This document shows positions 37,701 through 46,688 of a stretch of 64,000 nucleotides of DNA, piece after piece; positions within the stretch are counted from its first letter, which is position 1; each line of letters starts with the position of its first letter. A program made the position numbers and the translations under genes. The stretch spans positions 496,001 through 560,000 of the forward strand of contig CAJFCJ010000003.1 in assembly GCA_904063045.1 (NCBI GenBank), given 5' to 3'. The stretch comes from Dimorphilus gyrociliatus (lineage: Eukaryota; Animalia; Annelida). The notes below the pieces were generated by a model that saw only the letters and a program-made list of their open reading frames with translations, ran no database searches and was not told the origin of the DNA.

Positions 37701-39596
37701 TGGTTGGTTGTTTGATAGTTTTTTATTTTTGACCTACATCTAATCTTTAAGATATAAGGAACCCCAAAAAAAAAAACAAAACTGTGTTAACTATTGTTGA
37801 CACAATTGACAAAAAAAGAAACTTAATTAATTCATAAAACTGTTACTATTTCGATACTCTTTTCAATTAAAAAAATGAAGTAATATGTAAATGTATAGTA
37901 TCTAGGTTAAATAATACGAGAAATTCGAATAAGTTCAATACTACGATAAAATATAAAAAAAAGAATAATAGTATAGATTAAAGAGTTTTAGATAGATATA
38001 GTTGTCCTTGTTGTTTAAATTATTATACAGTATATATATATATATATATATATTAATATTAATGTGTACTAACCCAGATATATCGGCAAAACATTCAAAA
38101 TCAGTAAGTTCAGGGAAGAATACACTATAATTTTTAACATCATTCCAATTAAGAGATATATTATATAAAGGTGTTTCGACTTCAGGATCATCTTCGTCAT
38201 TATTCTCGGGAAGGTTATAACGTTGTACCGGATAAGAGCAAACTTTAATTCTAGGTATTAATCGGCGAAGAATTAAAGATAAAAGCATCCCGTTTGAATC
38301 GGAAGTTTCGTAAATGTCCGAGAGGATTTCTAATGGGAGGGGGTTATATACGTTATATAATTTTGTGTTAATAATAATTTATGTATGTTTTTATATAGAT
38401 TAATAAATAAATAAAGTTTTAAATATTAAAATATTTCTAACCCAAAGCTCCACAACTATTTAAAATACATCGGGCTTGTTTTAGCATAGCAACACGTTTA
38501 AATATTCTCAATAGACCTTTTCGAATAGCATTAAATCTTGGTTTAGTATTTTCGTACTTTTGCCAAAAAACAAACAAGTTTAACAGAGTGGGTAGGGCGT
38601 CACCGCCAACTAATCTAGCAGCATTATTCTTATTCTTAACCAAGACTGATATAGTTTCTAAAGTGAACTTGAGAAGCATAGTATACTTTTGTCCGCAGCC
38701 ATTTACAATTTTCATTAACGTAACTAGGATATTCTCTTTTCCCATATAAGACGAATTTAGTGCGCTGGCCGAACAAAGTTTTAGAACATGAACAATTGGT
38801 ATAATACTTCTATAGTACGTTGAACGTTCCCGTACCAAATTAATTAAAACCTGTAGAATAGATAATTAAATACTCAACAATACTCGTAAACTTTTTATTC
38901 TGTTGTTTAACGTGTAACAACACGAAAAACGAAGCGGAAAAAGTCAATAGATCCTTCAATATATAGTATAATTAATTGACTATTGTAAACTTTTAAAACA
39001 AAAAAACCACTCTAAAGGGTTTTTTATATATGTCTGTATGTTTATAAATACCCATAAATAAAAAATAGAGTTTTTTTAGTCAATAAATTAATTAACTAAG
39101 TGAAGAAAATAAATTGTTTGTAATTTAGAGAAAATTGAAATTTTACCTGTAAAGCGCCAGTTAATCGTGCCTTAGTGGCAACTTTCTTATCTCTCACTGC
39201 TAGCTTTGTTATTATTGTAAAACAATTTAAAAGTATTTCTAAGAATCCGCTACGGTTTTCAAATCTCACAACATATGTAAAAACTGTTTGGGTAACTCCT
39301 TGTTGAACTAAGGCAACTAGCCTTGAAGAGCCGGATGATGAAATTAAATCTCCTAAAATGTCCACAGTTAACTTTGTTATTTTTTCATCCTCGCTCAACT
39401 TTGGTGTTCTCAGTAGAATGTTTAACGAGTTATTACAATTTTTTGCCAGAAAATCCCTATTAGCCTTATCTTGCGATCGAATATATTGAAGAGTTTTCGT
39501 TAAACAGTTTCTAACTTGAATAGTTTCATCTTCGTTCCATTGATCATTGGAATTTTGTAACTTGTCAAGATTTTGAATAACGGCGGCCAATCTCAT
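34790..39596 (-). CDS. AGTPBP1: Cytosolic carboxypeptidase 1 (tubulin deglutamylase, Nna1)
   Basis: N-terminal ARM-like exons; [23 protein letters not shown]; Zn motif RVHPGES; [12 protein letters not shown]; DLHGHSR; YTMEST; acidic tail. The start codon could lie slightly upstream. Confidence 0.92.
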
Positions 39597-41206: not shown

Positions 41207-42959
41207 TTAAAATTCAAACATACACTTATATAACCTTTGTCCTAACTTAACATATTCGTCTCTTTCTCTATCGGTCATTGTTTCAACAAGTTGCTCGTCT
41301 ATTGAACTATAAAGTACAGGTTTACCACCGACGTATATAACTGGATCTTCTTCTGGCCGACCTATATCCATTTTATCTTCATTATCAATTTGAACTGTAG
41401 AAACTATTTGAACTTTGGGTTTGGATTTTCTTTCGGCTTGTTTTGCAGCTTGTTTTAAGGAATTTTTCTCGTTAGCTTCATCTTCTGAACTTGTACTGTC
41501 GTCTGAATCACTACTTTCGCTTGTCTTTTTAACAACTGATGACACAAGATTATTCTGTTTGCCTTTCCTCTCATAGATTAGTAAAGTGTTAATAATTTCA
41601 TCATTTTCACTTTTAGCTTTTGAAACGTTTGTCACACTTGAAGGTGGCGCCATAATGGTGGTTTCGTCGTGCTAAATAATAAATGATAAATAGTAAAAGA
41701 AAGAAATCAGTAGAATATACTTTGGCAGGGAATTAAATTAAAATATATATCTATATTTATTACATAAGCTTCTGCTCCATCGATTGTTGATTCCTGCATC
41801 CATATTGGCTGCTCTTTCTTTTCTGCTTTTTCGTCATTATCATCCATATTAATAATAATTTGTGGATCAGCAGGATCGTATATTGAATGATTTTTCTCTT
41901 TCCACCTTTCTTCTTTTGGAGATTTGGCTGAGTTTCTTGCCTTACCAATGCTATATTCGTGGGGAGCTGGTTCGTTCAGCTCTCTACTTAATTTCATATC
42001 TTCTACTTGTTTCAAAAGTTGATATATAGGCTCTATTTGTTCATTAAATTTAACCATTAACGCTCGAGCATCTTCAGCAGGAGTTGTTGTTTCTTCTTCT
42101 TCCAACTCGGTTTGACAGTATGTGCACCTAAATAAATTTTCAAAATACTTAGCAAGGATTCATTTTTAACCGAAAATTCGCAACAAACCTAAATTGTTTA
42201 GCTATGGGATCAAACAATTGATCCGCTTCTAAATCAGTGAATTGTTTCTGACAGCATGGACATTTGAATGAAGCCCTATTTGTCGAATCTCTTTCTTCAG
42301 TTTCGATTTTCCTTCTCATGTGTTCCAATTTATATTTAACAACGTTCACAAACGTTGTATAATGAATAGAATAATAATTATGCCTAGTTGCTTTTCCCTC
42401 ACTATCAGTCTCAACCTTCATTTGTACTCTGACGAACTTGTCCAATTTCAAACTGCTAAGATAAGACCGCAATTGTTTTCTAGATGAGGAAAGGAAAAAG
42501 CCAATCACTTTTAATCGTTTTTCATTAAGTAAAACATTTATTAATTCTAAATATATTCTACCATTGGTAATGCTAGAAGTTTTGAAAAACATTTTCTAAT
42601 TGAATGATAATCAATATAGTTCTAATAGATAATAAAACTATATTAGTTTTATTGCAATAAAAAACAATTAACAAAGTTTTCTGAAGTTTAGTTTACTGCA
42701 TTTATTTTACCAATATTCTAATTCAAAAAACAAGATTTTACAAATAGTATTAAACCGGCGTAACATTTGAAATAATTTAGTACCTTTCAAACTGCAAAAG
42801 TAAAGCAATATCATCCTCCTTGATCCCTGGTTTTCTAATAAGCACATCCACCACTAAGGAATATTCTATTCCGTAGAAAGCTCTTATAATATAACGGACT
42901 AGCCTCGTTAGGATTTGGGGAACTTCGGTTAAAACACCCGGATCATGAGGATCAGCCAT
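41207..42959 (-). CDS. GTF2E1: General transcription factor IIE subunit alpha
   Basis: [35 protein letters not shown], Zn ribbon FKCPCC...[15 protein letters not shown]-terminal acidic domain. Confidence 0.96.
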
Positions 42960-43140: not shown

Positions 43141-43235
43141 AAACAAAAAAAATGAAGGAAGAACGGTCGCAAGTTGAAAATAAAGCATAGTTATTCATTC
43201 AATGTGATTCACAACCGCTATAAGACGATAAAGAC

Positions 43236-45377
43236 ATGAACGGATTATCTTTTAGCGAACTATGCTGTTTATTCTGCTGCCCGCCCTGCCCATCGAGGAT
43301 TGCAGCTAAATTGGCATTTCTTCCCCCAGATCCTACTTATTCTATCATATCGGACGAATCTGGCTCCAGATTTAGCTTACACCTGACAGAAAGAGCTGAA
43401 TGGCAATACGGGCAGAGAGAATTAGATTGGATTGAGGTTAGTGCTTTTGACTCATCGTTATGACACAAAAATTGATGGAGTGGTATAAAAGCCTACGCTT
43501 CACGCCTTAAGCTTTCATATGTACTTCTTTATAGAAGGATGTCTTTATAACTTATTTTAATATTACTAGAAAATCAAAGAATGTCTTTGTACAAGATGTA
43601 TATTGGCATATATATACATATAGGAGAGGTATGTCACATCGGTATTATATACCTATCTAAATGGTAGATGGTCTACTAAAATACCACTAAACCTGCCCAC
43701 TGTGATTCTATACAATTAAACTTGATACTTGTTGATTAGTTACTTCATTACGCTTTTTTTTTAAACATTAGTTTTATAATGACAAAAATAGTAATAAATA
43801 TAATAAGGAATATTTGCACTAAAACTAATCAATTTGCTAAAATCAATTACAAGAACTAAAATTATGTTTGATATATAAATAAACGCTCTTTTTCTTGGAG
43901 CGTATCAGAAAGATGATCAACTTAATTTATGTTGGAGAAGAGAATATTGATATTTTACTTATACATAATATATTTTTTATTACTTTTTAATTTAAAAAAA
44001 AGCAAAGTGTTATAGGCGTTTAAAAATGATTAACAATTAATAGGCGTTATTATAATTTGATTCTCTCTAGTCAGAAGAATAGAAAAACTTGACTTATTTT
44101 TTCTTCTCTTTTCTATCGGCTTTATATTTAGTTTAATAAATAAATATACTGTATATCAATAAGTTTTTTTTCCAATTTATAGATCCTTGCTCCTCCTTTT
44201 ATTATTATATCTTAATGATTTGGTGCGTTTCCGTAAATATAGTTTGTCCTAGATGTTTGACGCTTGAAATATTAAGTACAATATAATCGATAAGAAAGAT
44301 TGTTAATTATTATCATTTTTTTAGGTAAATTAGTAGTTTCTATATAAACATATATATGTATATTTAAATATACAGTGTATAATATATAGATGAACTAGTT
44401 CGTATTTAAGAATATATTAAATTATTGCAAGGTACACTCTCCACTGTTGTTTTACAAGGTATATAATCAATTACTTTCTATGATTCTCTCTAAGTGTTAA
44501 CAGTACTTGTTCCGCATGCATAAAGGGCAGAGAGATATTATGAGCTTAATTCAGTACATTTTTTTCCCATTAAATAACGCTTTTATTTTTTTCGCCCCTT
44601 GTTATTTTATACAAAAGATTGTGTTTTTTTTTACAGGTTTTTAAAATTAGAACGTCGAGGAATAACCGGATAGCATGCGCCTATATTCGATGTTGTCCAA
44701 AAGCAAAATATACTGTTCTCTTTAGCCATGGAAATGCCGTAGATTTGGGCCAAATGACCAGCTTTTATATAGGATTAGGAACGAGAATCAACTGTAATAT
44801 ACTGTCCTATGACTACAGTGGTTATGGAGTAAGCACAGGAAGACCGTCTGAGAAGAATTTGTATGCTGATATAGACGCTGCCTGGGCTGCATTAAGAAAC
44901 AGATATGGTATTAGTCCTCAAAATGTGATATTGTATGGTCAAAGTATAGGAACGGTTCCTACAATTGATCTGGCTTCCAGATATGAGGTTGGAGCTGTTG
45001 TACTTCACTCACCATTAACGTCGGGAATGAGAGTTGCATTCCCAGAAACAAGGAGATCCTGGTTTTTTGACGCTTTTCCAAGGTTAAATTATATAGAGAT
45101 TAATTAAAGTTGATTCAATTGTCATTAACGTAAATCGTGTTCTATTTAAATTTACAGTATTGATAAAGTGCCGAAAATTACTGCCCCCGTCCTAGTCATT
45201 CACGGAATGGAAGACGAAGTAATTGACTTTTCGCATGGAATGGCAATACATGAGAGATGTCCTCGAGCAGTTGAACCACTTTGGGTCGAAGGAGCCGGTC
45301 ATAACGACATCGAAATTTTCCCCCAGTATCTGGAAAGGTTAAAAGCTTTCTTGAACAATGACCTTCTGCACGATTGA
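43236..45377 (+). CDS. ABHD17: Alpha/beta hydrolase domain-containing protein 17 (depalmitoylase)
   Basis: Exons 43236-43436, 44637-45082, 45158-45377. Palmitoylation cluster [19 protein letters not shown], triad GQSIG / EDEVID / GAGHND; TGA at 45375-45377. Confidence 0.97.
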
Positions 45378-45762
45378 CAATTAGCGGCGGCGACGACAAC
45401 GATGGTGACGGCGACGACGACTAATCTTACACCTATGCTTACCGACGATGACAGACCAACAACTGAAGACCGTCTCGAAGTTATCAGCAATCCTGTAGCA
45501 GTTGATGGTGATCAAGCTTCTAGAAATACGTCATCTCCTATTTTTACAGACGGTGGGGTAGGGGCTATGTTCAAATATGAGCAACCGAAAAGTCTCAACT
45601 TTCGGGTTATTGAAGGCGCCGAGGGACACACCGTCACCTCAACTTATTATACAACAATACCGCCATCGTCACCATCACAGGTTCAAAGATTAGCGAATGG
45701 AAAGTCTAATTCGAAAGGTTTATATGTTCATAATCCAGGGAATGGTCGATCGTCGCCGCCGC
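45375..45762 (+). promoter_or_regulatory. Readthrough signal: UGA-CAAUUA plus long-range RNA helix
   Basis: TGA CAA TTA; 45384-45396 GCGGCGGCGACGA is the exact reverse complement of 45750-45762 TCGTCGCCGCCGC; nested 45401-45410 pairs with 45667-45676. Confidence 0.65.
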
Positions 45763-45836
45763 ATTCGGATCCGGGCAGCTCACCGCGTTTTCTTGGTGGG
45801 CGAAAAAGTCCGGCGCCTAGTTCGCATTCGAACTAG
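45378..45836 (+). CDS. Candidate stop-codon readthrough extension of ABHD17 (152 codons, S/T/P/D-rich)
   Basis: In frame with the ABHD17 TGA and open to TAG 45834-45836. It is GC-rich like the exons and drops abruptly to AT-rich UTR after the TAG. Confidence 0.7.
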   Translation, partial: QLAAATTTMVTATTTNLTPMLTDDDRPTTEDRLEVISNPVAVDGDQASRNTSSPIFTDGGVGAMFKYEQPKSLNFRVIEGAEGHTVTSTYYTTIPPSSPSQVQRLANGKSNSKGLYVHNPGNGRSSPPHSDPGSSPRFLGGRKSPAPSSHSN

Positions 45837-46688
45837 ATATTTTTATGAGAATTATTTCGTTTCATTTTTTTTCTTTTTTTTTTAAACAATCATTTATTAA
45901 ATTGATTCTGTTAAAATACAAATTATAGCCGGTGTATCAACAAAAGCATAGCGGTATCAACAATAAAATCTACAGAACTGCAAGGATCCTAAACAATAGT
46001 CATGCCTACCAACCCAGTTGCTTATTTTGCATTTTTGTGCATGACTAGCATAATTTTGTGTCTTATGAATATGTATTGGAGAGTAAAAGTTGAAATGAAA
46101 CATTATAATCTAAAACACGTTCCAAATAGCTCAGTTAAAAGAGAAAAAAGCAGGCATCTCTTAATCAAAGCTTTTACCTCACCCAAATAAATATTTTTTT
46201 ATTTAATAAGAAGAATCGGTTTACGTCATATAAGAATCCTTTTAATACTTGTTTATTTCACTACTAATGATATTTCTAGATGTAAGGCTTTTGACGCTCC
46301 TTTAATTTCTTTCATTTGCCTATTCACGAAAGAGTCCATTAAGAAATCACATTTTTCATTTTGTATATATATTAATATAAATATATATATAGACAAGTAC
46401 ACATATTTCATAGGAAAATTTCATAAGTCTTCTATTACATAAGTAGCTGATTGAGTTGATAAATGATAGACACACAACCTAATAAATAATGATCAACTTC
46501 CTTTAAAGCAAGGTCCTAAAACCCTAAATTGGAATCTAAATAATGCGTTGACTAAATTACCTTAAAAAATGAGCAACCAACAGAAAAAAAAATATTTTAG
46601 AAGCAAGTCAACCGATGAGAACTCCATCTTCCATAATAAGCTTAGTTCTTTCCGGTAAAGAAAAACTAATTTCAGAAAAAAAAATACC

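Follow-up and report, generated by a model that had tools for sequence, protein, structure and literature searches.

We found evidence that the ABHD17 mRNA of the annelid Dimorphilus gyrociliatus (family Dinophilidae) undergoes programmed stop-codon readthrough, a reading to which we give a probability of roughly 0.78. The gene lies in a stretch of 64,000 nucleotides (contig CAJFCJ010000003.1 of assembly GCA_904063045.1, positions 496,001 to 560,000 of the forward strand), here called the window, to which all coordinates refer. From comparisons of DNA and RNA sequences we infer that most ribosomes would end at the UGA at 45375-45377, giving the canonical enzyme of 288 amino acids, and that a fraction of them would decode this UGA by a near-cognate tRNA and continue for 152 codons to the UAG at 45834-45836. 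The product would be an isoform of 441 amino acids with a disordered tail rich in Ser, Thr and Pro. The leak would probably be favoured by the UGA-C/CAA-UUA context and by a GC-rich stem of 13 base pairs, the 5' arm of which starts 7 nucleotides past the stop, a position near the mRNA entrance of the ribosome when the stop is in the A site. An earlier reading of the same DNA, made before any search (the sequence-only reading), had proposed that readthrough of this UGA adds a tail of 153 residues to ABHD17. The proposal is supported by the coding signature of the extension, the conserved UGA-CAAUUA, an mRNA that is not spliced across the stop, the lack of a selenocysteine insertion sequence (SECIS) family around it and the precedent of flies and mosquitoes.

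The features of the gene, including its untranslated regions (UTRs), are as follows.

~43158 (start), + strand: 5'UTR of ABHD17, placed by RNA contigs
43236..43436, + strand: coding exon 1, with an N-terminal Cys cluster; junctions from spliced RNA contigs
44637..45082, + strand: coding exon 2, hydrolase core; from spliced RNA contigs and the joined coding sequence
45158..45374, + strand: coding part of the last exon, ending ...LNNDLLHD (...CTG CAC GAT before TGA)
45375..45377, + strand: first ABHD17 stop, TGA followed by C, the proposed leaky stop; present in the window, L001, L002/L003 and RNA contigs
45378..45383, + strand: CAATTA, a tobamovirus-type CARYYA context and also the 6-nucleotide spacer ahead of the stem; identical in three lineages
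45378..45833, + strand: proposed readthrough extension, 152 sense codons rich in Ser, Thr and Pro, in frame with ABHD17
45384..45396, + strand: predicted 5' arm of the stem, GCGGCGGCGACGA; found in minimum-free-energy, centroid and consensus folds
45402..45404, + strand: in-frame ATG in good Kozak context (A at -3, G at +4), kept in all three lineages
45750..45762, + strand: predicted 3' arm of the stem, TCGTCGCCGCCGC; invariant in three lineages and within the block of highest synonymous-site conservation
45834..45836, + strand: second stop, TAG, conserved; 3 further codons are open behind it
45837..46149, + strand: AT-rich 3'UTR, running to the end of the X19 transcript contig

When the three exons are joined (43236-43436, 44637-45082, 45158-45377), they encode 288 amino acids identical to DgyrCDS2063 of D. 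gyrociliatus, for which the linked UniRef entry names a palmitoyl-protein hydrolase and Pfam returns Hydrolase_4 and Abhydrolase. The product is 75-82% identical to ABHD17B/C across animals. By its sequence, the upstream open reading frame (ORF) is a typical ABHD17/FAM108/AHO-3 palmitoyl-protein hydrolase.

Both ORFs are found on the same mature mRNA, as in the definition of a readthrough gene given by Jungreis et al. An RNA contig of 1708 nucleotides (X19) shows 0 differences from the window over the blocks 43167-43434, 44635-45080 and 45156-46149, the RNA contigs placing the exon 1/2 junction at 43434/44635 (+2). A metatranscriptome contig (X1) is unspliced over 45156-45785, that is, across the TGA and into the extension, and a spliced transcript contig from a related lineage (L001) carries the coding sequence, the TGA and the extension. 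In four RNA runs we observed two constitutive junctions only, and the contigs of these runs have no loose ends near the ABHD17 stop; the TGA itself was seen in RNA contigs of two runs.

All surveyed ABHD17 orthologues have their stop where the window has the TGA at 45375-45377. This TGA is followed by CAA TTA and by 152 uninterrupted in-frame codons up to the TAG ending at 45836, exactly as the sequence-only reading had it, and the drop from a GC-rich extension to an AT-rich UTR is also as described, GC content being 0.45-0.49 throughout the extension and 0.25-0.31 immediately beyond the TAG. Counting the residue placed at the UGA, the tail would have 153 amino acids and the long isoform 441. 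The other five frames of this stretch contain 5-16 stops each, and frame 0 stays open in only 0.05% of mononucleotide shuffles.

Strong evidence comes from related lineages. Our comparison set consisted of three lineages, namely the window, L001 and L002/L003, the latter two supplied by Logan assemblies; a fourth, closer lineage was represented by a metatranscriptome contig (X10) covering 45443-45679 only. All three lineages have kept the TGA, the CAATTA, the TAG and the reading frame between them unchanged. Nucleotide identity of L001 and L002 to the window is 93-94% in the coding sequence of the last exon, without indels, 76-78% in the extension, with a single indel of 6 nucleotides, and 64-73% in the 3'UTR, with 44-140 gap positions. 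Differences within the extension fall on the three codon positions as 30/16/64, 24/14/64 and 16/9/47 (chi-square p 6e-8 to 1e-9), the ratio of nonsynonymous to synonymous substitution rates (dN/dS) is 0.13-0.15, and 52-63% of the changed codons are synonymous in frame 0 versus 5-14% in other frames. With random substitution at the observed level, the ORF stays open in just 2-3% of cases, and neither stops nor frameshifts occur in the extension in the three lineages. Moreover, all six differences listed for the X10 contig are third-position and synonymous. The second ORF thus carries the protein-coding signature, in frame with the first, by which Jungreis et al. define readthrough genes. These substitution patterns mark the extension as a sequence under selection for protein, read in the frame of ABHD17, and a chance open frame is excluded. 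Comparisons with relatives had been put forward from the sequence alone as one way to corroborate or overturn the idea; their outcome was purifying selection in frame, an unchanged TGA-CAA-TTA in the three lineages and a frame with no shifts or early stops.

Two further properties of the extension stand out. Its synonymous rate (dS; 45378-45833) is ~1.0, a three- to fourfold excess over the 0.24-0.30 of the neighbouring coding sequence (45158-45374). Additionally, the extension is heavy in NCG codons, with GCG accounting for 6 of its 10 Ala codons and for 0 of 22 in the coding sequence.

Two candidate recoding signals adjoin the stop. The first is CAATTA, a CARYYA hexanucleotide directly behind the stop and kept in the three lineages; TGA-CAATTA being the same in the window, L001 and L002/L003, it is a conserved leaky stop in the sense of Jungreis et al. 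In reticulocyte lysate and HEK293 cells, UGA-CAA-UUA gave 5.8-10.1% readthrough (Firth et al. 2011, PMC3159437). The second is a perfect stem of 13 base pairs that pairs 45384-45396 with 45750-45762 across a loop of 353 nucleotides. It is common to the minimum-free-energy, centroid and three-lineage consensus folds (fold z = -3.07), and a stem so long and so near the stop arises with P ~0.002 when synonymous codons are shuffled and in 0 of 3000 shuffles of codon order. Conservation at third positions is higher where the extension begins and around the 3' arm than over most of the part between: identity is 6/10 for codons 1-10 and 6-7/10 for codons 111-150, compared with 1-4/10 over codons 51-110. 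The stems described behind readthrough stops by Firth et al. 2011 (PMC3159437) have 11-14 base pairs, start 7-9 nucleotides past the stop and enclose loops of 101-268 nucleotides.

The sequence-only reading knew of no earlier description of ABHD17 readthrough, but there is one: in the entries of Jungreis et al. 2016 (PMC5100048, Data S1) on which we draw here and below, it is already listed for Drosophila CG33096 and for Anopheles AGAP010402 and AGAP013018. AGAP010402 has an extension of 69 codons behind TGA-C; AGAP013018 has one of 93 codons, also behind TGA-C, and is a case of double readthrough with a third ORF of 786 codons. Both are given as orthologous to CG33096-RG, which is marked 'RT', with an orthologous stop and the label 'Ancient'; in these entries the evidence for CG33096-RG comes from the two Anopheles rows that cite it. 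CG33096 also appears in the paper describing the conserved hydrolase AHO-3. What is new here is the phylum, Annelida. The sequence-only reading had pointed to the frequent functional readthrough of insect neural genes; as the host is an annelid, this background is not directly relevant. The fly and mosquito orthologues are precedents for this very gene. The same study conjectured that abundant functional readthrough is confined to Pancrustacea, that is, insects and crustaceans (PMC5100048). Our literature search found nothing linking Dimorphilus to readthrough.

ABHD17 sequences from other animals were surveyed for the stop and for what follows it.

Haliotis (L007): TGA-CTAG, 49 open codons ending in ERVV; 11 codons past the second stop
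Aplysia (L010): TGA-CTAG, 79 open codons ending in ERVV; 95 codons past the second stop
Dreissena (L013): TGA-C, 28 open codons ending in ETLL; 14 codons past the second stop
Gryllus (L008): TGA-CAACTA, 30 open codons ending in EKLL; TAG, then 74 codons
Polistes (L009): TGA-C, 46 open codons ending in EKLV; TAG, then 402 codons
L006: TGA-C, 26 open codons ending in EKLL; 15 codons past the second stop
L005: TGA-C, 5 open codons, no motif at the end; 28 codons past the second stop
Nematostella: TGA-C, 5 open codons, no motif at the end; 20 codons past the second stop
Owenia: TAA-C, 60 open codons, AT-rich, no motif at the end; 2 codons past the second stop
Ptychodera (hemichordate): tandem stops TGA-TGA, 0 open codons; 8 codons past the second stop

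With the three dinophilid lineages counted, TGA-C is present in 11 of the 13 surveyed sequences. The extensions of Haliotis, Aplysia, Dreissena, Gryllus, Polistes and L006 have 26-79 codons and share the ending E-x-[LV]-[LV], which looks like a conserved C-terminal motif exposed only by readthrough. Met is absent from five of the six, L006 having one, so that these five could be expressed only by readthrough. In length, the Dimorphilus tail exceeds the other extensions by a factor of three to five.

In both insects the second stop is TAG-C and a long open frame follows, of 402 codons in Polistes (L009:3772-5121) and 74 in Gryllus (L008 after 3243). They recall AGAP013018, the double-readthrough entry whose third ORF has 786 codons.

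Different leaky UGA-C contexts occupy the same ABHD17 stop: CAAUUA in the annelid, CUAG in gastropods and CAACUA in Gryllus. Given the shared leaky stop and the E-x-[LV]-[LV] end common to molluscs and arthropods, the event would seem to predate both phyla, and the sequences surveyed are suggestive of a protostome-wide origin of ABHD17 readthrough. That this recoding dates to the protostome ancestor, and is not a dipteran or pancrustacean feature, is a tentative view that we hold to be somewhat doubtful. The protostome ancestor lived more than 500 million years ago.

The strongest alternative to readthrough, which we nevertheless regard as improbable, is that the conserved frame encodes a separate protein of ~144 amino acids, started at AUG 45402 by termination-reinitiation or internal entry or carried by a separate transcript. 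Gene callers do predict a stand-alone ORF (P0001, 144 amino acids; P0005; P0006), and a start 24-30 nucleotides past the stop is compatible with coupled reinitiation. Reinitiation behind an ORF of 288 codons, however, is normally very inefficient. Moreover, the frame is that of ABHD17 in all lineages, the only indel between the TGA and the ATG being one of 6 nucleotides that preserves it, and a downstream ORF would have no need of the conserved leaky UGA-CAAUUA or of the stem that adjoins it. Five of the six orthologous extensions of molluscs and arthropods have no Met with which such a protein could begin. As to a separate transcript, which the sequence-only reading had named as a possible way to the frame, its ATG is indeed conserved, but no RNA contig begins near 45400 and there are no loose ends there.

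Less probable still is that the UGA is removed or recoded in a minority of RNAs, either by alternative splicing within the last exon or by adenosine-to-inosine (A-to-I) editing of UGA to UGG. A long GC-rich duplex does lie nearby, and contigs drop rare variants; nevertheless, only the two constitutive junctions appear in the four runs, position 45377 is A in all contigs, the 13-base-pair stem excludes the stop codon and the conserved leaky context would be left unexplained. The weak AG at 45383-45384 had been singled out as a splice site through which the ORF might be reached. By frame arithmetic on the exon coordinates, a splice from exon 2 to this AG would join the extension in the wrong frame and remove the coding part of exon 3, which presumably holds the catalytic Asp and His of the hydrolase fold; no such junction was seen in the RNA contigs. 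This bypass was rejected.

Annelids have selenoproteins, and an in-frame UGA with a conserved coding frame behind it is what a selenocysteine codon would also look like. We consider this very unlikely, as all orthologues end the canonical protein at the same codon and the entries for the fly and mosquito cases class them as readthrough (PMC5100048). A scan of 45100-46600 on both strands, the whole 3'UTR included, returned no SECIS family (Rfam cmscan, E<=10), and membership among selenoproteins was discarded. Finally, a non-functional accident of the 3'UTR has only the prior that most open frames behind stops are due to chance, and is hardly credible given that purifying selection acts in this frame specifically and that the shuffle tests argue against chance. 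An assembly error is equally hard to credit, the TGA being found in three lineages as well as in RNA contigs of independent origin.

Several points weigh against programmed readthrough in Dimorphilus. The evidence consists of sequence comparison and RNA contigs, and the latter are assemblies from which rare spliced or edited forms drop out. The extension is confined to three or four closely related lineages, and no homologues of the tail were found outside them when 1.84 billion representative proteins were searched with HMMER. Independent initiation at the ATG at 45402 would be compatible with the conservation of this codon in the three lineages and with its good Kozak context. The stem lacks covariation, neither of its arms varying among the three lineages, and its spacer has 6 nucleotides compared with 7-9 in described cases. 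The Dimorphilus tail lacks a terminal E-x-[LV]-[LV] and is only putatively homologous to the extensions of molluscs and insects. In addition, Owenia, the other annelid, has TAA-C and an unconvincing AT-rich frame of 60 codons, which we did not count as support.

The tail is predicted to be disordered, as had been guessed from its composition: its mean pLDDT (the confidence score of AlphaFold) is 40.6, a value that leaves no fold with which to search structures. No Pfam family was found in it. Apart from the window's own ORF, the HMMER matches were bacterial repeat proteins (P0002-P0004), which we rejected as spurious, the resemblance being a compositional one of the type 'DDDFTTTED'. A word-index search with the tail returned two close relatives only, and metagenome scans with two conserved blocks gave nothing and then one GC-rich contig (L014), which is unrelated. 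Within the Dimorphilus tail, 'TTEDRLEV' might be a remnant of the TEKLL/ERVV end motif, which would be speculation, as the segment is too short for a test. Any effect of the tail on phospho-regulation or localisation would be equally speculative.

Some further observations concern the gene and its surroundings. The first ~110 nucleotides of the 3'UTR (45837-45950; ATATTTTTATGAGAATTATTTCGTTTCAT...AAACAATCATTTATTAAATTGATTCTG) are nearly identical in related lineages and the rest is indel-rich; by this conservation, the segment may be a regulatory element. Within intron 1, the stretches 44140-44172 and 44342-44372 are 90-95% identical to other abundant X19 contigs with loose ends on both sides, and judging from these matches they probably belong to a dispersed repeat. 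Upstream, a TFIIE-alpha gene (Pfam TFIIE_alpha and TFIIE-A_C; 41207-42959, - strand) lies head-to-head with ABHD17. Its first ATG lies ~200 nucleotides from the 5' end of the ABHD17 transcript contigs, and both genes are therefore probably served by one compact bidirectional promoter. Farther upstream is a CCP1-like carboxypeptidase (38437-39596, - strand). Spliced ABHD17 transcripts also occur in environmental RNA, in a coral metatranscriptome (X1) with 0-2 differences per contig and in a marine metatranscriptome (X10) from a relative ~3% diverged, indicating that dinophilid worms were present in those samples.

ABHD17 enzymes remove palmitate from proteins such as PSD-95 and N-Ras. If readthrough takes place, an isoform with a long disordered tail could alter where or when depalmitoylation happens. 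In a wider sense, an annelid ABHD17 with the full signature, at a stop orthologous to the 'ancient' one of flies and mosquitoes and common to molluscs, makes this gene a concrete test case for the idea that certain readthrough events are older than the divergence of the protostome phyla. Should the protostome ancestor already have had it, insect-style abundant readthrough, with a virus-like context and an extended stem, would operate in Spiralia, in contradiction to the published conjecture of a pancrustacean origin (PMC5100048).

The Dimorphilus genome is very compact, so that this worm could be a convenient non-insect system for the study of the CAAUUA context and its long-range stem.

Among known systems, the dipteran ABHD17 candidates are of the same gene family, with an orthologous stop position, TGA-C, a protein-like extension and a call made from evolutionary signatures. 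The Dimorphilus extension is longer, with 152 codons compared with 69 and 93 in the Anopheles entries, and is not followed by a second readthrough, since 3 codons are open past its TAG as opposed to the 786-codon ORF of AGAP013018 and the 402 codons of Polistes. Its tail also differs in having no similarity to any annotated protein and in lacking the E-x-[LV]-[LV] end of the sampled insects and molluscs. Within annelids, the only earlier proposal of readthrough that we found, by way of PMC5100048, concerns the EFLGa peptides of Platynereis (Conzelmann et al. 2013, as cited there). Unlike ABHD17, these derive from an unrelated neuropeptide precursor, for which no comparative signature was seen reported in that source.

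The short contexts offer a second comparison. Like the UGA-CUAG-type system (a 2014 study as cited in PMC5100048), Dimorphilus ABHD17 would represent short-context readthrough of UGA-C in a cellular gene; the gastropod orthologues of Haliotis and Aplysia carry the exact TGA-CTAG, whereas Dimorphilus has CAAUUA instead. The latter is the exact hexanucleotide behind the tobamovirus stop (stop-CAA-UUA), conserved here in the three lineages. The differences are that the host is a cellular animal gene, that the stop is UGA and not UAG and that a downstream stem is added. This stem brings the annelid gene close to a class of readthrough stimulators known as extended 3' stems, members of which are found in alphaviruses, in furoviruses and in a Drosophila readthrough gene discussed along with kelch and headcase (PMC3159437). 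Dimorphilus departs from this class in its 6-nucleotide spacer, its 353-nucleotide loop and the lack of compensatory changes. It resembles the class in having a predicted stem of 13 base pairs closely behind a UGA, with a large loop, and in the raised synonymous-site conservation that coincides with the stem.

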